DNA of 64,000 nucleotides, from NCBI GenBank assembly GCA_965603825.1, contig CBFDEM010000003.1, forward strand, positions 372,001 through 436,000. Reading direction: 5' to 3'. Position numbers and translations under genes: made by a program. Source of the DNA: Blepharisma stoltei ATCC 30299 (Eukaryota; Protista; Ciliophora). Under the pieces are notes generated by a model. It saw nothing but the letters and a program-made list of their open reading frames with translations. It searched no databases and was not told the DNA's origin. This document shows, in pieces, positions 35,097 to 45,948 of this stretch (position 1 is its first letter; each line of letters begins with the position of its first letter).

Positions 35097-36149
35097 TTAG
35101 AGTCTTGGCAATTGAAGTTTTCTCCCATTACTATTTATGAAATAAGGCATAATTGTTGTATCTCCTATAGAGATAATTGAGTCTGGGTTTCATTCAATTT
35201 TCTTTTGATTTTTGGTAATAAGTTTATTGTTTACTGCAGAATTGAAATTTGTAGGCTGATGCTTAATTAGCTGTGCTGCTAAGTTATATTCCATAATAAG
35301 CGATTCTCTATAGCTCATATGTATTCCTCTTCTGAATGCTTCTTTTGCAATTCTTAATGATAAAGGACATAGTTCGCTTATCCTTTTTAAAGTCTTAAGA
35401 CTTCAGTCACTCCCTACCAATTTCAACCTATAAATAATAATCTCCAAATTTAAATGCACATCAAAGCAATATCTCAATTCCTTCAAAACTGGTAATATTT
35501 TCGATTTATTTCTATCTGGATCTATATGATATTTTTCTAAAATTTCTATTAAATTCCCAGCACTTTGCATTTCTCTGATAATTTCTTTTTTATCTTTTTC
35601 TATATAGTATTCAGCAAATCCAAAAAGATAGCAATCAATACCATTAAGCCTTTCAGCAGCTAATGATAAATATAAACCTAGCTCTGAAGGGTTTACTCTG
35701 CTTAAAAAATGAGAAGCTCCTACGTCTGGGCAGTATCCTATAGAGCATTCAGGCATAGATCAAAGAGTTTTTGGAGTAGCGACTCTAATAGAGCAAGACC
35801 ATGCTAATCCAGCTCCACCTCCAAATGTGATACCATCCATGATAGCGATTCTTATAGTAGGAATTTGAGAAAAAGAATACCATAACTTAGACTCAGATTC
35901 AAAAATTTCTTCAACATCGACTTCACCTTTGGTCATAATCACTATATCTCCGCCTGCACTTAAAGCTCTGCCTTCACCATACCATAAGATATTTTTGTTT
36001 TCAAGCTTGGCTCTACGAGATAGTGAGTGTAAAATATTAAGCATTTCCATGTTGAAGGAGTTTAGAGATTCTGGACGATTCAGTTTGATGAAAAAGGTGC
36101 TATGGATTTCTTCATAGAGAATGAAAGAGCTATTTAAGGCAGATTCCAT
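35097..36149 (-). CDS. HIBCH: 3-hydroxyisobutyryl-CoA hydrolase-like (crotonase family), 350 aa
   Basis: LNRPESLNS, GRALSAGGD, MDGITFGGGAGL, W(TGA)SMPECSIGYCPDVG. In frame to TAA at 35097. Confidence 0.85.
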
Positions 36150-36254
36150 AAATTTTTATATAATGATAATGTGCTAATTAATTTTGTACAATAATTGCGC
36201 TTAATATATGAGAGCATTATAAAATGAAAAAATAATTAAACTTTAATGAATCGC

Positions 36255-37556
36255 TTAACTATAAGTGTTAACTAGTCTTAATTGTTTTGTTGAAAGATTA
36301 AATTCCCAGAGCTGATTTTGCAGAAGGATCATATATATGCAACCATGATATTCTATTACATAAGTTGTAGGATTAGCACCATGTTTAATGCTATTAGTAC
36401 CTATCAAGTTTCATTTATTAACATTATTCTCTTCACTTTCAAATATATTTCCACCTGTTTGTAGAATAAACGCTTTTTTGCATCCCTTAAACATTATTTT
36501 TAATACGTTTTGAGTCAAATTTAATCCGATAATATCACTATAATTGTTGTTTTTAGGACTGTATTTTATCATCTTGGTAAGATAATATCCTGTCAGTAAT
36601 ATTGCTTCATTAAATAAAACTGCTGCAGTTTGAGTAAAATTGAGACCAGCTGGAAGAGGAGCACAGTCTTCTCATGTATTAGATTTAAGGCAAAATCTTT
36701 GTGCCAAATTATTTCCTCCTCCTAATGCATACACAAATCCATCAAAATAAATTGGGTATAAATAAAGGCTCGGCTTAGAATTTGCAATTTGTTTGATATT
36801 TTTATTTTTATCTATGATAAATGTGTATCCAGATGATGAATTAGGGTTTGAGTAATAAAAAACACTTTTATCTGGTAAGATGCAGCTTGAAATTTGAAAG
36901 TGAATATTTTCTATAAGGTCAAGGTTGAATTTAGTTTCTTGAAATGTTTTTAAATTTATTTCCGATAACTCTTTATTACTATTTCCTTTAAAAAATATAT
37001 ATTTATCATCTTGTATCGAATTAATATTATGAAAAGGATCTATATTGGCATTAAAATAGGTACTAATATTCGAAACTAGAGACTCTGTTTTCGATATAAA
37101 ATTTGGGAAATATCATTTTTGAGCTTCAATATCAGCAGCAAAAGGTTCCATTTTCAAAACGCTTTCAGGGTCATTTTCTTTGCTCAAATCAAGTATTTCA
37201 TTAAATTCAGTCATCAAAGCAATTCTTGAAAATTTTTCTTCTAACTTGTCCAAGCTTTGTAGGGCCTTTTCTAAATTATTTTTCACAGATCCAATAATTT
37301 CTTTTGCGTCTAAAATAACGTTTTTCCTGTATTTCTGCAGGCCTTGCCTTAGTTCAGCAATTTTTTTCTGAATCAATATTTTAGTTTCAGCAGCAGGCGT
37401 ATAATATAATCTTAAGAATTGATGCCTTTTATCTCCAACTAAGGTTTGCATATGTTTAGTGCCGTGGATTTCACAAAATATGGTATAATCCTCGCTGCAA
37501 TCGCACTTGCCATATGGCTTACTTGAGCATCCAGACACAAAGCATTTGCTGGCCAT
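36255..37556 (-). CDS. Array copy 1: B-box-like Zn finger, coiled coil, kelch-like beta-propeller (433 aa)
   Basis: Intact with TGA=W. C-x4-C-x6-CxC-x7-C-x2-H-x3-H N-terminus; VYALGG...W kelch-like blades. Confidence 0.85.
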
Positions 37557-37767
37557 CTTTTGAGAATCTATAAAATTATTATGAAATATATTTAATTAAC
37601 TTGCAGACTCATGAATTAGTATTTATTATCACTCGTAGACGTTTTTAAATTTTGGCTCCGAGTTGCCTTACACTTCCTGAGGCCTGCTCACAGTTTTCCA
37701 CTTTATTATTTTGGATGTTTTCCAATGAGTAGTTGCAGTAGCTCTTCAACAGTTCTTTAATTCAAAG

Positions 37768-37855
37768 TTAGAGATTCTGGACGACTCAGTTTGATGAAAA
37801 ATGTGTTATGGATTTCTTCATAGAGAATGAAAGAGCTATTTATAGCAGATTCCAT
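37768..37855 (-). pseudogene. Short 5' fragment of HIBCH (about 90 bp)
   Basis: Near-identical to 36062-36149 and truncated. Confidence 0.85.
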
Positions 37856-37956
37856 AAATTTTTATATAATGATAATGTGCTAATTAATTTTTTCATTACT
37901 TGCGTTAATATATGATAGCATTATAAAATGGAAATAATTAAACTTTAATGAATAAC

Positions 37957-39273
37957 TTAGCTATAAGTGTTAACTAGTCTTAATTGTTTTGTTGAAAGAT
38001 TAAATTCCCAGAGCTGATTTATTAGGAGGATCATATATATGCAACCATGATATTCTATTACATAAGTTGTAGGAGCATAATTTGATGGAATATTATTATT
38101 GCCTATCAAGTTTCATTTATTGACATTATTCTCTTCACTTTCAAAAATATTTCCACTTGTTTGTAGAATAAACGCTTTTTTGTCTCCCTTAAATAGTATT
38201 TTATATACGCTTTGAGTTAAATTTAATCCGACAATATCACTATAATTGTTGTTTTTAGGACTGTATTTTATCATCTTGGTAAGATAATATCCTGTGAGCA
38301 GTATTTCTTCATTAAACAAAATTGCTGCAGTTTGATGAAAACTGAGACCAGTTGGAAGAGGAGCACAGTCTTCTCATGTGTTAGATTTAAGGCAAAATCT
38401 TTGTGCCAAGTTATTTTGTCCTCCTAATGCATACACAAATCCATCAAAATAAATTGGGTATAAATAGCGGCTCACCTTTGAATTTGCAACTTGTTTGATA
38501 TTCTTATTTTTATCTATAATAAATGTGTATGTAGATGTTAATGAATTAGGGTTTGAGTAATAAAAAACACTTTTATCTGGTAAGATGCAGCTTGAAATTT
38601 GAAAGGGAATATTTTCTATAAGGTCAAGGTTGAGTTTAGTTTCTTGAAATGTTTTTAAATTTATTTCCGATAACTCTTTATTACTATTTCCTTTAAAAAA
38701 TATATATTTATCATCTTGCATCCTATTAATATCAGGTTTTGGACGCTGAAAAGGATCTATATTGGCATTAAAACAGATACTAATATTCGAAACTAGAGAC
38801 TCTGTTTTCGATATAAAATCTGGAAAATATCAATCTTTAGTTTCAAAATCAGCAACATAGGGCTCCATTTTCAAAACGCTTTCAGGGTCATTTTCTTTGC
38901 TCAAATCAAGGATTTCATTAAATTCAGTCATCAAAGCAATTCTTAAAAATTTTTCTTCTAACTTGTCCAAGCTTTGTAAAGCCTTTTCTAAATTATTTTT
39001 CACAGCTCCAATAATTTCTTTTGCGTCTAAAATAACGTTTTTCCTATATTTCTGTAGGCCTTGCCTTAGTTCAGCAATTTTTTTCTTAACCAATATTTTA
39101 ATTTCAGCAGCAGGTGTATAATATAATCTTAAGCATCGATGCCTTTTATCTCCATCTAAGATTTGCATATGTTTAGTGCTGTGGTATTGACAAAATATGG
39201 TATAATCCTCGCTACAATCGCACTTGCCATATGGCTTACTTGAGCATCCAGACACAAAGCATTTGCTGGCCAT
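37957..39273 (-). CDS. Array copy 2 (438 aa)
   Basis: Intact frame with TGA=W; paralog of copy 1. Confidence 0.85.
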
Positions 39274-39489
39274 TTTTTGAGAATCTATAAATTATTATGA
39301 AATATATTTAATTAACTCACAGGGTCGTGAATTAGTATTTATTATTACTCGGAGACGCGTTTTAATTTTGGCTCCGAGTTGCCTTACAGCTTCCTTAGGC
39401 CTGCTCACAGTTTTCCACTTTATTATTTTGGACTGTTTTGTAATAAGCTCTTCGATAGTTCTTTAGTTCAAAGTTACCTAATCATTTAT

Positions 39490-40031
39490 AGCATTCAACA
39501 AATCCAAAAAGATAGCAATCAATACCATTAAGCCTTTCAGCAGTTAATAATAAATATAAACCTAGCTCTGAAGGATTTGCTCTGCTTAAAAAATGAGAAG
39601 TTCTACATCTGGGCAGTATCCTATAGAACATTCAGGCATAGATCAAAGAGTTTTTAATGTAGCGACTCTAATAGAGCAAGACCATGCTAATCCAGCTCCA
39701 CCTCTAAATGTGATACCATCCTAGATAGCGATTCTTATAGTAGGAATTTGACAAAAAGAATACCATAACTTAGACTCGGATTCAAAAATTTCTTCAACAT
39801 CGACTTCACCTTTGGTCATGATCACTATATCTCCACCTGCACTTAAAGCTCTGCCTTCACATACCATAAGATATTTTTGTTTTCAAGCTTGGCTCTACGA
39901 GATAGTGAGTGTAAAATATTAAGAATTTCCATTTTGAAGGAGCTTAGAGATTCTGGACGATTCAGTTTGATGAAAAAGGTGTTATGGAATTCTTCATAGA
40001 GAAAGAAACAGCTATTTATGGCAGATTCCAT
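39490..40031 (-). pseudogene. Truncated HIBCH duplicate
   Basis: Copy of about 35605-36149 with a 1-nt deletion near 39860 and ATG changed to TAG near 39721. Confidence 0.88.
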
Positions 40032-40119
40032 ATAAATGTTTATGCAAAGGATATACAATAATTGCGCTTAATATATGATAGCATTATAAAGTGAAAATAA
40101 TTAAACTTTAATGAATCGC

Positions 40120-41429
40120 TTAACTATAAGTGTTAACTAGTCTTAATTGCTTTGTTGAAAGATTAAATTCCCAGAGCTGATTTTTGTTGAGGATCATATA
40201 TTTGCAACCATGATATTCCATTACATAAGTTGTAGGATAATAATTTCTTGCAATATTATTACTACCTATCAAGTTTCATATATTGACATTATTCTCTTCA
40301 CTTTCAAAAATATTTCCACTTATTTGTAGAATAAACGCTTTTTTGTCTCCCTTAAACATTATTTTAAATAGGCTTTGAGTTAAATTTAATCCGATAATAT
40401 CACTATAATTGCTGTTTTTAGGGCTGTATTTTATCATCTTGGTAAGATAATTTCCTGTCAGTAGTATTTCTTGGTTAAACAAAACTGCTACAGTTTGATC
40501 AAAATTGAGACCAGCTGGAAGAGGACACAGTCTTCTCATGTGTTAGATTTAAGGCAAAATCTTTGTGCCAAATTATTTCCTCCTCCTAATGCATACACAA
40601 ATCCATCAAAATAAATTGGGTATAAATAAGGGCTCGGTTTTGAATTTGCAACTTGCTTGATATTTTTATTTTTATCTATGATAAATGTGTATTCAGATGA
40701 TGAATTAGTGTTTGAGTAATAAAAAACACTTTTATCTGGTAAGATGCAGCTTGAAATTTGAAAGTGAATATTTTCCATAAGGTCAAGGTTGAATTTAGTT
40801 TCTTGAAATGTTTTTAAATTTATTTCCGATAACTCTTTATTATTTCCTTTAAAAAATATATATTTATAATCTTGTATCGAATTAATATCAGGTTTTGGGC
40901 GCTGAAAAGGATTTATGTTGGTATTAAAACAGGTACTAATATTCAAAACTAGAGACTCTGTTTTCGATATAAAATCTGGGAAATATCATTTTTTAGTTTC
41001 AAAATCAGCATCAAAGGGCTCCATTTTCAAAACACTTTCAGGGTCATTTTCTTCGCTTAAATCAAGAATTTCATTGCATTCAGTCATCAAAACAATTCAT
41101 GAAAATTTTTCTTCTAATTTGTCCAAGCTTTGCAGGGCTTTTTCTAAATTATTTACCACGATTTCAATAATTTCTTTTGCGTCTAAAATAACGTTTTTCC
41201 TATATTTCTGTAGGCCTTGCCTTAGTTCAGCAATTTTTTTCTTAACCAATATTTTAGTTTCAGCAGCAGGCGTATAATATAATCTTAAGCATCGATGCCT
41301 TTTATCTCCAACTCAGATTTCGAAATGTTGGGCAGCGTGGATTTCACAAAAAATGGTATAATTCTCGCTGCAATCGCATTTGCCATATGGCTTACTTGAG
41401 CATCCAGACACAAAGCATTTGCTGGTCAT
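40120..41429 (-). pseudogene. Array copy 3, frameshifted (or assembly indel)
   Basis: Length 1310 nt is not a multiple of 3. One G is missing at 40525/40526 (gaggacacag against gaggagcacag in the other copies). Two new TGA codons. Confidence 0.75.
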
Positions 41430-41889
41430 TTTTTGAGAATATATAAAATTATTATGAAATTATATTTAATTAACTCACAAGTCATGAATTAGTATTTATT
41501 ATCATTCGGAGATTGCTTAATTTTGACCACCGAGTTGTTTTTGCAGCTTCCTCAGGCCTACTTGTAGTTTTCCGATTTATAATTTCGGAATGTTTTCCAA
41601 TGATTAGTTATGGTAGCTCTTCGACAGATCTTTCATTCAAAGTTAATAATTTATTTATAGCACTACTCTTTATATCTCAATTACGGATTAATTATAGGAA
41701 TAGAGTATTGATATTCAGTTCTATAATTTTACAAGTTTATGAAGATTGCGGAAACTGACTTTTTATTTTAGAAAATGCTGCCAATTCAAAGAATTTATAC
41801 AAAATTTAATTAATATATTTAAAGCCTATTAAGTGACCTCTTTAGTCATTTTCAAAGGAAGCATACTTTAAATATTAAAATATGTTAAG

Positions 41890-42067
41890 ATGTCAAATCA
41901 ATAGTTAGAAATAATTTTTTGAAAAATAGCAAAGATAGTTATTGTGTGCTTTGTCTTTTTTCATTGGATTTTCATATGAAATAGCAAATGGAGAAAACTT
42001 CTTAATAGAAATATGTAAAACTCGGAAAATTGAAATAGACTCAAAAGGAAAATCATGACCTGTATAT
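41890..42067 (+). pseudogene. Truncated 5' duplicate of the hidden ORF at 45949-46422
   Basis: 41640-42067 duplicates about 45680-46113, with small indels. Confidence 0.75.
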
Positions 42068-42497
42068 ATTATTTAGCAAATCCAAAAAGATAGCAATAAA
42101 TACCATTAAGTCTTTCAAGAGCTAATGATAAATGTAAACCTAGCTCTGGAGTATCCTATAGAAATTTCAGGCACAGATCAAAGAGTTTTTGGAGTAGCGA
42201 CTCTAATAGAGCAAGACATGCTAATCTAGTTCCACCTCTAAATGTGACCATCCATGATAGTGATTCCTATACTAGGAATTTAACAAAACGTATGCCATAA
42301 CTTAGACTCAGATTCAAAAATTTCTTCAACATCGACTTCACCTTTGGTCATGATCACTATTAAAGCTCTGCCTTCACATACTATAAAATGTTTTTGTTTT
42401 CAAGTATGGCTCTAGAGATTTGGACGATTCAGTTTGATGAAAAAGGTGTTATGGATTTCTTCATAGAGAATGAAAGAGCTATTTATGAAGATTCCAT
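42068..42497 (-). pseudogene. Heavily decayed HIBCH duplicate
   Basis: Colinear with 35605-36149 but with several internal deletions. Confidence 0.85.
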
Positions 42498-42589
42498 AAA
42501 TTTTGATATGCAAATGATAGTAAGATAATTATATATAAAACATGATAGAATATCTAACAAGAAATAATAATTAGACTTTAACGAATCGA

Positions 42590-43849
42590 TTAATTATAAG
42601 TGTTAACTGGTCTTAATTGCTTTGTTGAAAGATTAAATTCCCAGAGCTGATTTTGCAGGAGGATCATATATATGCATCCATTATATTCTATTACATAAGT
42701 TGAAGAATAAGCGCCTGATGGAATATTATTACTACCTATCAAGTTTCATTTATTGATATTGTTCTCCTCACTTTCAAATATATTTCCACTTGTTTGTAGA
42801 ATAAGCGCTTTTTTGCCTCCCTTAAACAGCGTTTTTCTGCTACCTGAAGTTAAATTTAATCCGATAATATCACTATAATTGTTGTTTTTAGGGCTGTATT
42901 TTATCATCTTAGTAAGATAATTTCCTGTCAGTAGTATTTCTTGGTTAAACAAAACTGCTGCAGTTTGATCAAAATTGAGACCAGCTGGAAGAGGAGCACA
43001 GTCTTCTCATGTGTTAGATTTAAGGCAAAATCTTTGTGCCAAATTATTTCGTCCTCCTAATGCATACACAAATCCATCAAAATAAATTGGGTATAAATAA
43101 GGACTCCGCTTTGAATTTGCAACTTGTTTGATATTCTTATTTTTATCTATGATAAATGTGTATGTAGATGTTAATGAATTAGGGTTTGAGTAATAAAAAA
43201 CACTTTTATCTGGTAAGATGCAGCTTGAAATTTGAAAGTGAATATTTTCCATAAGGTCAAGGTTGAATTTAGTTTCTTGAAATGTTTTTAAATTTATTTC
43301 CGATAACTCTTTATTGGATGATCCTTTAAAAAATATATTGTTATTAAAATAGGTACTAATATTCGAAACTAGAGACTCTGTTTTCGATATAAAATCTGGG
43401 AAATATCAATCTTTAGTTTCAATATCAGCAGCAAAAGGCTCCATTTTCAAAACGCTTTCAGGGTCATTTTCTTTGCTCAAATCAAGGATTTCATTAAATT
43501 CAGTCATTAAAACAATTCTTAAAAATTTTTCTTCTAATTTGTCCAAACTTTGTAGCGCCTTTTCTAAGTTATTTTTCACAGCTCCAATAATTTCTTTTGC
43601 GTCTGAAATAACGTTTTTCCTATATTTCTGTAGGCCTTGCCTTAGTTCAGCAATTTTTTTCTGAATCAATATTTTAGTTTCAGCAGCAGGCGTATAATAT
43701 AATCTTAAGCATTGATGTCTTTTATCTCCAACTAAAGTTTGCATATGCTGAGCGGCATGGAGTTGGCAAAATATGGTATAATTCTCGCTGCAATCGCACT
43801 TGCCATATGGCTTACTTGAGCATCCAGACACAAAGCATTTGCTGGCCAT
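42590..43849 (-). CDS. Array copy 4 (419 aa; in-frame linker deletion near 43335)
   Basis: Length 1260 nt; intact with TGA=W. Confidence 0.82.
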
Positions 43850-44142
43850 CTTTTGAGAATCTATAAAATTATTATTATGAAATTTATTTAATTAACTCAC
43901 ATGGCCATGAATTAATATTTATTATCATTCGGAGGTTTTCTTTAATTTTGGCTCTGAGTTGCCTTGCAGCTTCCTCATGCCTGCTATAGTTTTCGCTTTA
44001 TAATTACGGACTGTTTTGCAATAAATTATGATTTTCTATTCGTTAATTAGAATAAATGATTATTTAAAAGATATAAAATAATTATATACAATTCTTAATA
44101 GCATATCTAATTGGAAAGAATAATTAAACTTTAATGAATCAA

Positions 44143-45456
44143 TTAATTATAAGTGTTAACTAGTATTAATTGCTTTGTTGAAAGATTAAATTTCCAGAGC
44201 TGATTTTGCAGGAGGATCATATATATGCATTCATTATATTCTATTACATAAGTTGAAGGATAAGAACCTGATGTAATGCTATTACTACCTATCGAGTTTC
44301 ATTTATTGATATTGTTCTCTTCACTTTCAAATATATTTCCACTTGTTTGTAGAATAAACACTTTTTTGCCTCCCTTAAACAGTATTTTTCTGCTACCTGA
44401 AGTTAAATTTAATCCAATAATATCACTATAATTGTTATTTCTAGGGCTGTATTTTATCATCTTGGTAAGATGATTTCCTGTGAGTAGTATTTCTTCATTA
44501 AACAAAACTGCTGCAGTTTGATCAAAATTGAGACCAGCTGGAAGAGGAGCACAGTCTTCTCATGTGTTAGATTTAAGGCAAAATCTTTGTGCCAAATTAT
44601 TTCGTCCTCCTAATGCATACACAAATCCATCAAAATAAATTGGGTATAAATAAGGACTCCGCTTTGAATTTGCAACTTGTTTGATATTCTTATTTTTATC
44701 TATGATAAATGTGTATGTAGATGTTGATGAAATAGGGTTTGAGTAATAAAAAACACTTTTATCTGGTAAGATGCAACTTGAAATTTGATAGTTAATATTT
44801 TCCATAAGGTCAAGGTTGAATTTAGTTTCTTGAAATGTTTTTAAATTTATTTCCGATAACTCTTTATTATTTCCTTTAAAAAATATATATTTATCATCTT
44901 GTATCGAATTAATATCATGCTTTGGGCGCTGAAAAGGATTTATGTTGGTATTAAAGCAGGTACTAATATTCAAAACTAGAGACTCTGCTTTTGATATAAA
45001 ATCTGGGAAATACCAATCTTCAGTTTTAAATTCAGCATCAAAGGGCTCCATTTTCAAAACGCTTTCAGGGTCAAATTCTTTGCTCAAATCAAGTATTTCA
45101 TTAAATTCAGTCATCAAAGCAATTCTTAAAAATTTTTCTTCTAATTTGTCCAAGCTTTGTAGGGCCTTTTCTAAATTATTTTTCACAGCTCCAATAATTT
45201 CTTTTGCGTCTGAAATAACGTTTTTCCTATATTTCTGTAGGCCTTGCCTTAGTTCAGCAATTTTTTTCTTAATCAATATTTTAGTTTCAGCAGCAGGCGT
45301 ATAATATAATCTTAAGCATTGATGCCTTTTATCTCCAACTAACATTTCCATATGTTGAGCGGCATGGAGTTGGCAAAATATGGTATAATTCTCGCTGCAA
45401 TCGCACTTGCCATATGGCTTACTTGAGCATCCAGACACAAAGCATTTGCTGGCCAT
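44143..45456 (-). CDS. Array copy 5 (437 aa)
   Basis: Intact. TGG at 45013-45015 where copies 1-4 have TGA. Confidence 0.85.
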
Positions 45457-45948
45457 TTTTTGAGAATCTATAAAATTATTATGAAATTTATTTAATTAAC
45501 TCACAGTTCATGAATTAGCATTTATTATCATTCGGAGACTTTCTTTAATTTTGGCTCCGAGTTGCCTTGCAGCTTCCTCAGGCCTGCTGTAGTTTTCGCT
45601 TTATAATTACGGACTGTTTTGCAATAAGTAGTTGCAGTAGCTCTTTGACAACTCTTGAGTTCAAAGCTACTTCCCGTCTAATAATTTATTAATGAACGCT
45701 ACTCTTTATAATCTCAATTACTGATGAATTATAGGAATAGAGTATTAATATTCAGTTCTTTCAAACTTACAATTTAGGAAGATAAGGATATTGACTTTTA
45801 TTTTAGAAAATGCTGCCAATTCAAAGAATTTAAACAAAATTTAATTAAATATATTTAAATATATTTAAAGCCTATTAATTGAACTCTCTAGTCACTTTCA
45901 AAGCATACTTTTAATATTAAAAATATGTTAAGATGTTAAATCAAATAG

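Follow-up and report, generated by a model that had tools for sequence, protein, structure and literature searches.

The locus described here is a tandem array of five paralogous genes for Kelch-propeller proteins in the heterotrich ciliate Blepharisma stoltei. The window, i.e. the whole stretch of DNA analyzed, is 64,000 nucleotides (nt) long, corresponds to positions 372001–436000 of contig 3, a macronuclear contig of a source assembly of 41.46 Mb in 64 contigs, and has a G+C content of ∼30%; positions below are those of the window. Once TGA was read as tryptophan, five minus-strand open reading frames (ORFs) spanned exactly positions 36255–45456, where the original prediction, made from the sequence alone, had placed five tandem paralogs. 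From the 5′-most gene onward, these are C1 (44143–45456; 437 aa, product P0001), C2 (42590–43849; 419 aa, P0005), C3 (40120–41429; P0002), C4 (37957–39273; 438 aa, P0003) and C5 (36255–37556; 433 aa, P0004). The reassignment of UGA to tryptophan is stated in the B. stoltei genome paper (PMC9942806) and was supported here by codon 148 of the alignment, which is TGA in C2, C4 and C5 and TGG in C1. The array copies are 85–92% identical to one another, and C1, C2, C4 and C5 are intact with products of 419–438 aa. C3 carries a deletion of one nt between 40525 and 40526, right after ..NTWEDC and not in a homopolymer, so that its annotated product ends at 313 aa and the remainder of the propeller lies in another frame. 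Three framework motifs that had been called invariant were unchanged in all of the five copies. The array, with a period of more than 500, was missed by Tandem Repeats Finder, and a word-index protein search with the N-terminal piece of C1 matched only the window's own five proteins. Two plus-strand ORFs of 120 aa at 40915–41277 (opposite C3) and 44942–45304 (opposite C1) were rejected as antisense shadows, their conservation arising only from the shadowing.

The protein architecture was predicted for C1 with AlphaFold from an alignment of 88 sequences, and the model has a predicted local distance difference test (pLDDT) value of 93 and a predicted template modeling (pTM) score of 0.76. In this model, a zinc finger (residues 1–47; 45316–45456, minus strand) is followed by a single long helix (residues 56–115; 45112–45291, minus strand), shorter helices (residues 130–168) and 23 strands (residues 189–435; 44152–44892, minus strand) that make up the propeller. 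Kelch_6 exceeded its threshold for one blade in all four intact copies, with 29.8–32.6 bits against a cut-off of 25.3 (32.6 for C1), and the Pfam Kelch families (Kelch_6) matched 77 of the 88 family members. Foldseek returned the six-bladed Kelch structures of SAKe6 (a designed protein), KLHL3, KLHL2 and Keap1 with target template modeling (TM) scores of 0.71–0.76 and E-values down to 5e-13. The C-terminal domain is thus, by profile, predicted structure and structural comparison, a closed six-bladed Kelch propeller, in agreement with the original prediction. Directly before the propeller, we also noted in-frame deletions in the linker, of 19 codons in C2 and of 4–5 codons in C5; since model confidence is lowest in this linker (pLDDT 72–80), it appears to tolerate changes in length.

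The N-terminal finger has eight near-invariant ligands in 56 relatives (C5, C10, C18, C20, C28, H31, H35 and H45) with the pattern C-x4-C-x7-C-x-C-x7-C-x2-H-x3-H-x(6-9)-H, and these eight Cys/His residues fit a two-zinc cross-brace. Compared with what we take to be the B-box1 consensus, the second half of the pattern alone fits. Pfam zf-B_box matched none of the 88 family members at E≤0.01, and none of the Pfam B-box, RING and ZZ models matched any of them. No RING was found in P0001 or the 88 members, the protein opening directly on its single finger with Cys5 as the first ligand, and Pfam detected no BTB or BACK domain in the array proteins or the 88 members. The finger profile gave nothing significant against the sequences of the PDB, and a Foldseek search with the finger gave only E≥0.5. 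With VIA, an exhaustive structural aligner, the finger matched the CPEB1 ZZ domain and COL2 B-boxes (both Z 4.9), the CYLD B-box (Z 4.5), TRIM28 B-box1 (Z 4.3, root-mean-square deviation 1.8 over 41 of 43 residues) and PML B-box1 (Z 4.0). An AN1 finger with a weak match (1x4v, E=1.1) was dropped, as the structural matches favored B-box1 and ZZ. An Atlas feature search with residues 1–180 gave scores of at most 0.85, which we treated as a lead only, and in an Atlas shape search all of the hits were generic Kelch proteins. We therefore describe the modeled finger as B-box1/ZZ-like by weak likeness of fold and do not claim membership. The long helix (pLDDT >90) has a hydrophobic stripe with a period of 3.5–3.6 residues that is conserved across the family, and this amphipathic helix of ∼60 residues probably forms a coiled-coil dimer, with which the periodicity is compatible without being proof of it. 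Of the TRIM-like layout that had been proposed, the order of an N-terminal Cys/His finger, a long helix and a C-terminal propeller was thus recovered, and because there is neither a Pfam B-box match nor a RING, ‘TRIM-like’ is used here for layout and not for membership.

Among the 438 alignment columns of the array, 106 varied in amino acid, and these were clustered: 40 pairs of adjacent variable columns were observed against 25.4 expected (p=0.0004), and the variance among windows was likewise raised (p<0.0002), while synonymous-only columns showed no clustering. Four of the five groups of variable patches listed in the original prediction were confirmed as genuine in-frame variation (SKRSP/SKPSP/SKVSR/SKPSL, GGR/GGG/GGQ, SGSR/QSLF/QSVY/QNVL and the SITSGSYP group). 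The DPSAK/DPPAK group was a +2 out-of-frame reading of ..MILLQNQLW.., a stretch that is itself variable in frame (LLQ/LNK/LLI). Blades were assigned from the strands of the model by the Kelch convention, in which a GG doublet ends strand B and a conserved Trp lies in strand D. The patches SKRSP, the PAGLNFDQT region, SGSR and NSITSGSYPS then fall in D-A loops, and GGR, GNH and LLQ in B-C loops. In a meander of four strands, successive loops lie on opposite faces, which puts the D-A and B-C loops together on the face that binds substrates in the Keap1 and KLHL3 propellers. Variable sites were enriched in the B-C and D-A loops relative to the remaining propeller sites (odds ratio 2.9, p=4e-4) and to the loops of the opposite face (odds ratio 2.4, p=0.04). 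By this assignment from secondary structure, the variable patches of the propeller sit mostly in these loops and on one face.

Two D-A loops stood out. The loop before blade 5 (44389–44400 in C1, minus strand) reads SGSR in C1 and QSLF, QSVY or QNVL in the others, has M2a posteriors of 0.98–1.0 at columns 356–357 in the codon models described below, and is also variable in three other paralog groups (B, C and D). The loop before blade 6 (44254–44283 in C1, minus strand; NSITSGSYPS) has posteriors of 0.95–1.0 at columns 396–399 and is variable in all five paralog groups. Outside the propeller, the zinc-finger helix (residues 29–40 of C1; 45337–45372, minus strand), which lies between and after the ligands C28, H31 and H35, was a recurrent hot spot in all five groups, with residues 33 and 36 varying in at least four of the five. 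This variation could mark a surface that prevents cross-assembly of paralogs, or a second ligand site.

Selection on these sites was evaluated with codon models of the Goldman–Yang (GY) type with F3x4 codon frequencies and 62 sense codons. On the three best trees, M2a was favored over M1a, and M8 over both M7 and M8a, with twice the log-likelihood difference (2ΔlnL) at 42–48; the comparison of M7 with M8 under TGA=Trp had been suggested along with the original prediction. The positive class comprised ∼7–10% of sites with a ratio of nonsynonymous to synonymous rates (dN/dS, or omega) of 5.7–7.4, and the columns with high posteriors were 30, 38, 147, 162, 184, 196, 197, 248, 267, 286, 356, 357, 364, 396–399, 417 and 418. 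The frameshifted C3 was rejected as the driver of this signal, which persisted without it (M1a versus M2a, 2ΔlnL 29.0); omega on the C3 branch was 0.67 against a background of 0.50, with no significant difference. Site-model tests are prone to false positives under recombination and multi-nucleotide changes. Because the copies are mosaic, we also fitted trees separately for four segments, by which both propeller halves favored M2a (p=4e-5 and 2e-4), the finger with the helix favored it weakly (p=0.017) and the linker did not. Differences of at least 2 nt were present in 43 codon columns, and when the two largest patches, which include multi-nucleotide replacements, were removed, 2ΔlnL was 25.4.

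Four further groups of recent paralogs (B–E; 80–93% identical, on contigs 35/4, 13 and 46) served as independent replicates. Their variable columns coincided with those of the array (odds ratio 3.0, p=8e-5), and group B showed the same enrichment in B-C and D-A loops (odds ratio 3.8, p=5e-4). With branch lengths fixed and the five groups pooled, omega was 0.22 in strands, 0.37 in the A-B and C-D loops, 0.35 in the long helix and 0.62 in the finger. Circularity was avoided by defining the hot spots of each group from the other four groups alone. At propeller hot spots cross-validated in this way, omega in the array was 2.14 (n=29, 2ΔlnL versus omega=1 of 18.1) and, for a smaller set, 3.27 (n=9, 2ΔlnL 18.4), and it reached 2.84 in group B and 3.44 in group E. 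The proportion of synonymous differences (pS) in the array was at the same level at hot spots (0.153) and elsewhere (0.128), and we rejected a local mutation hot spot because synonymous divergence is equal at hot and cold sites. Replacements therefore exceed the silent rate preferentially in the D-A and B-C loops and the finger helix, and the framework is under purifying selection. On the ligand-binding face, as assigned from secondary structure, there is a class of sites whose omega exceeds 1, and it recurs in independent lineages, in genes where recombination is present.

The spacers record how the array arose. The units start 1607–2420 nt apart, and each holds a gene flanked by ∼200–660 nt of conserved sequence upstream and ∼105 nt of sequence downstream, together with a stretch, differing in length between units, from the 5′ end of a gene of the ECH_2 enoyl-CoA hydratase/isomerase family. 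The intact ECH_2 gene lies immediately downstream of C5 (35097–36149, minus strand; Pfam ECH_2 E=4e-23 and 1.5e-21 on two pieces). A duplication scar at 39487–40119 (minus strand) holds a truncated 5′ part of this gene together with the C5–ECH spacer, with 92% blastn identity to 35603–36254, and shorter scars at 37768–37953 and 42063–42588 have 93% and 72% blastn identity to the same region. These scars between the Kelch copies show that a unit of ∼1.6–2.6 kb, which carried the hydratase 5′ end along, was duplicated segmentally several times as the array grew, and that deletions came afterwards; the ECH fragments are dead by-products of duplication that serve as markers for the order of events. 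The region upstream of C1 (45457–46113, minus strand) has counterparts before each copy, at 43851–44024, 41430–42067, 39274–39477 and 37558–37770, with 81–93% identity, and this repeated region probably holds the promoter and the 5′ untranslated region; we also noted that the ∼650 nt upstream of C1 and the region upstream of C3 (41430–42067) have 85% identity.

The copies are also recombinant mosaics, with many mutually incompatible splits among them. Neighboring informative sites had a compatibility of 0.759 against 0.534 when shuffled (p=1e-4), and the best tree differed between gene segments. Segments were thus exchanged among the copies after duplication, by gene conversion or unequal crossing-over. 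Conversion from distant paralogs is an unlikely source of the variable patches, as the next-closest paralog outside the array is only ∼37% identical in protein. Together with the scars, the frameshifted copy and the at least 120 loci of the family, often in arrays, the history of the locus bears out the birth-and-death evolution that had been proposed.

Sequencing runs were also mapped to the array. Four were guessed to be RNA by the tool, of which three (X8–X10) were mapped at ≥97% identity on 40000–45600. Their contigs were confined to coding sequence, in C1, C2 and, weakly, C3, with none in the spacers, while a DNA run covered nearly all bins, spacers included. One contig of X10 bridges C2 to C1, from 43313 to 44864, and skips 1550 nt, approximately one unit; one contig of X1, a DNA run, steps back by 2467 nt, from 42466 to 40000, approximately the C3–C2 unit. 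These jumps are most likely switches between paralogs in the assembly graph, and may instead be copy-number variants from unequal crossing-over.

Counted genome-wide, the N-terminal 298 aa have at least 134 matches (at least 120 loci), many in further tandem arrays. An exhaustive HMMER search yielded 344 representative proteins, the best of which were all from B. stoltei, and the nearest paralogs are labeled ‘unnamed protein product [Blepharisma stoltei]’ in GenBank. In Stentor coeruleus, full-length relatives of 435–456 aa with 22–24% identity are annotated as ‘Kelch motif family protein’ (OMJ65416, OMJ90241 and OMJ72066), and as these are full-length and of the same size, the architecture is older than the split between Blepharisma and Stentor; further full-length relatives occur in other assemblies. 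A literature search found no publication on the gene family of the array or its S. coeruleus relatives. Several other arrays of the family lie no more than a few tens of kb from contig ends, on contig C3 (not gene copy C3) at 558–575.7 kb (end 575,708), contig C4 at 2.8–3.6 kb and 1004–1013 kb (end 1,013,438), contig C54 at 834–843 kb (end 845,979) and contig C13 at 899–934 kb (end 941,580); a subtelomeric preference of the family's arrays is possible, and the array studied here is internal.

Sister proteins in the same genome carry other N-terminal modules on the same type of propeller. P0070 (CAG9326976) combines RING, B-box (zf-B_box 29.8 bits against a cut-off of 24.1) and Kelch, P0113 and P0121 combine a U-box with Kelch, and P0019 combines a protein kinase with Kelch. 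The propellers of P0070, P0113 and P0121 are homologous to that of P0001 (E ∼1e-12 to 1e-16), whereas the array genes have a divergent finger in place of the E3 domains. When the finger profile of the array was compared by hhalign with the RING/B-box region of P0070, it fell on the B-box with a non-significant E=0.5, which is not usable as proof. With the P0070 N-terminus as query, a word-index protein search retrieved nothing but P0070. Given such varied N-terminal modules on one propeller type, the natural reading of the propeller is a substrate- or ligand-binding module.

Among known systems, the closest in layout are the RING-less ‘TRIM-like’ and TRIM-NHL proteins of metazoans, which consist of B-box, coiled coil and a beta-propeller or SPRY at the C-terminus. 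Their modules come in the same order: a small cross-brace finger with two zincs, then a long helix and a helical linker, and lastly a domain for ligand binding. The array proteins differ from them in that they lack a RING, their finger fails zf-B_box and their C-terminus is Kelch; unlike a B-box, moreover, the finger has C-x4-C and C-x-C, and not C-x2-C, as its first two ligand pairs. Like the array genes, the ‘group 2’ TRIMs, described as fast-evolving, clustered and species-specific, are lineage-specific genes whose binding domain changes rapidly (PMC2533329). The TRIM module was described as metazoan-specific in the same paper, and its list of C-terminal domains of TRIMs does not include Kelch (PMC2533329). 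The resemblance to TRIMs may be convergent, or may reflect independent assembly from shared domains. With KLHL proteins and Keap1, the BTB-BACK-Kelch adaptors of cullin-3, the array proteins have the six-bladed Kelch domain in common, and the variable loops of the array correspond to their substrate face. The array proteins are not of the KLHL type, as BTB and BACK are both absent from them; in addition, their blades are shorter (∼41 aa), and dimerization would use the coiled coil and not BTB.

We consider it reasonably probable that the array is a local tandem expansion of a heterotrich ciliate family of diversified propeller-ligand receptors or adaptors, whose diversity as a repertoire would be kept by duplication, loss, shuffling of patches and positive selection. 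In such a scheme, the proteins would be cytosolic and dimeric through the helix, and the top face of the propeller would bind different protein ligands in different paralogs. Bound targets might be delivered, via partners or the finger itself, to ubiquitylation or another modifying activity, which is the most likely downstream action given that the sisters carry RING with B-box, U-box or kinase modules. Several points weigh against this reading. The genes are constrained overall, with a pairwise whole-gene dN/dS of 0.39–0.57 at dS 0.10–0.17, and the B-C and D-A loops as a class reach an omega of 0.78 pooled and 1.15 in the array, not significantly above 1, so that the diversifying selection originally proposed was found in site models and at cross-validated hot spots, but not for whole genes or for the loop class. 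Cross-validated hot spots in groups C and D gave an omega of ∼1 or below. The codon models were run in our own likelihood program and not in PAML or HyPhy, recombination and multi-nucleotide changes are both present in the array, a concern that the controls reduce only partly, and the loop faces were assigned from secondary structure and Kelch strand order and not from 3D coordinates. The putative RNA contigs suggest that array copies are transcribed, with the RNA label being a guess and the contigs carrying no expression levels. The proposed link to ubiquitin is drawn by analogy with paralogs only, the array proteins having no RING, U-box or BTB, and ligand binding by the array propellers is a candidate function.

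A rival account is relaxed constraint, by which redundant young duplicates drift in exposed loops, conversion and multi-nucleotide changes inflate omega, and the array is decaying. The omega values of whole genes and of the loop class, the demonstrated recombination, the 43 codon columns with differences of at least 2 nt, the frameshift in C3 and the hot-spot values in groups C and D all fit such decay. We nevertheless regard it as unlikely, for M2a still wins without C3, with per-segment trees and without the two multi-nucleotide patches, and hot spots taken from the other arrays give an omega of 2.1–3.3 here (2ΔlnL ∼18) with pS not raised; moreover, every copy but C3 has retained an open frame at dS 0.1–0.17. 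Exposure of the loops alone is no explanation, because the equally loop-borne sites of the opposite face have an omega of 0.37. These proteins might instead be structural or cytoskeletal Kelch scaffolds, for example cortical or of the contractile fibers, of a giant heterotrich, with copy number serving dosage and variation in the loops having no recognition role. Binding to actin or to other parts of the cytoskeleton is common among Kelch proteins, the coiled coil that the long helix may form could have a structural role, and the family is common to the large contractile heterotrichs Blepharisma and Stentor. Dosage, however, predicts homogenized copies and not replacements with omega above 1 on the ligand-binding face, the sister modules are E3 (RING and U-box) and kinase modules and not cytoskeletal ones, and contig depth in the putative RNA runs was low, though contigs measure expression poorly; we give this explanation little credence.

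If the propellers do act as receptors or adaptors, their ligands might be foreign. The array proteins would then be intracellular immune-type sensors like TRIM5alpha or finTRIMs, their propellers recognizing a virus, an endosymbiont or a pathogen effector, and an arms race would drive the loops. The signature is indeed that of the fast-evolving, clustered and species-specific TRIM genes (PMC2533329), with a large, lineage-specific and arrayed family, positive selection on the binding face and shuffling of patches. Yet the ligand in this account is pure conjecture, the proteins have no RING and no known signaling domain, and the diversification fits the partitioning of endogenous substrates or the avoidance of cross-assembly among paralogs equally well, so that we find it improbable for the array as such. 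The broader proposal that heterotrichs keep a germline repertoire of more than 100 finger–coiled coil–Kelch receptor genes as an innate defense or surveillance system against viruses, endosymbionts or foreign proteins seems to us doubtful, though slightly less so. Were it true, this repertoire would parallel the TRIM5/finTRIM restriction factors in unicellular organisms and would have been assembled independently of them, with new specificities arising from tandem duplication, shuffling of loop patches by gene conversion and positive selection.

Both animals (TRIM-SPRY and NLR) and plants are well known to have families of binding proteins that diversify under positive selection, but knowledge of comparable families in free-living ciliates is scant. 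The literature that we found suggests that the evolutionary mode is known from TRIMs and that the finger-helix-Kelch family of heterotrichs is undescribed. Read as a diversified set of propeller-ligand receptors or adaptors, the array offers a tractable case, with a confident model, defined hypervariable loops at the face by which Kelch propellers are known to bind substrates, the same hot spots across independent arrays and sister proteins in which the propeller is joined to E3 domains. The identity of the ligands could reveal a surveillance system of protists or a large system for partitioning substrates, and well over 100 ‘unnamed protein products’ of Blepharisma and Stentor would thereby gain a function.

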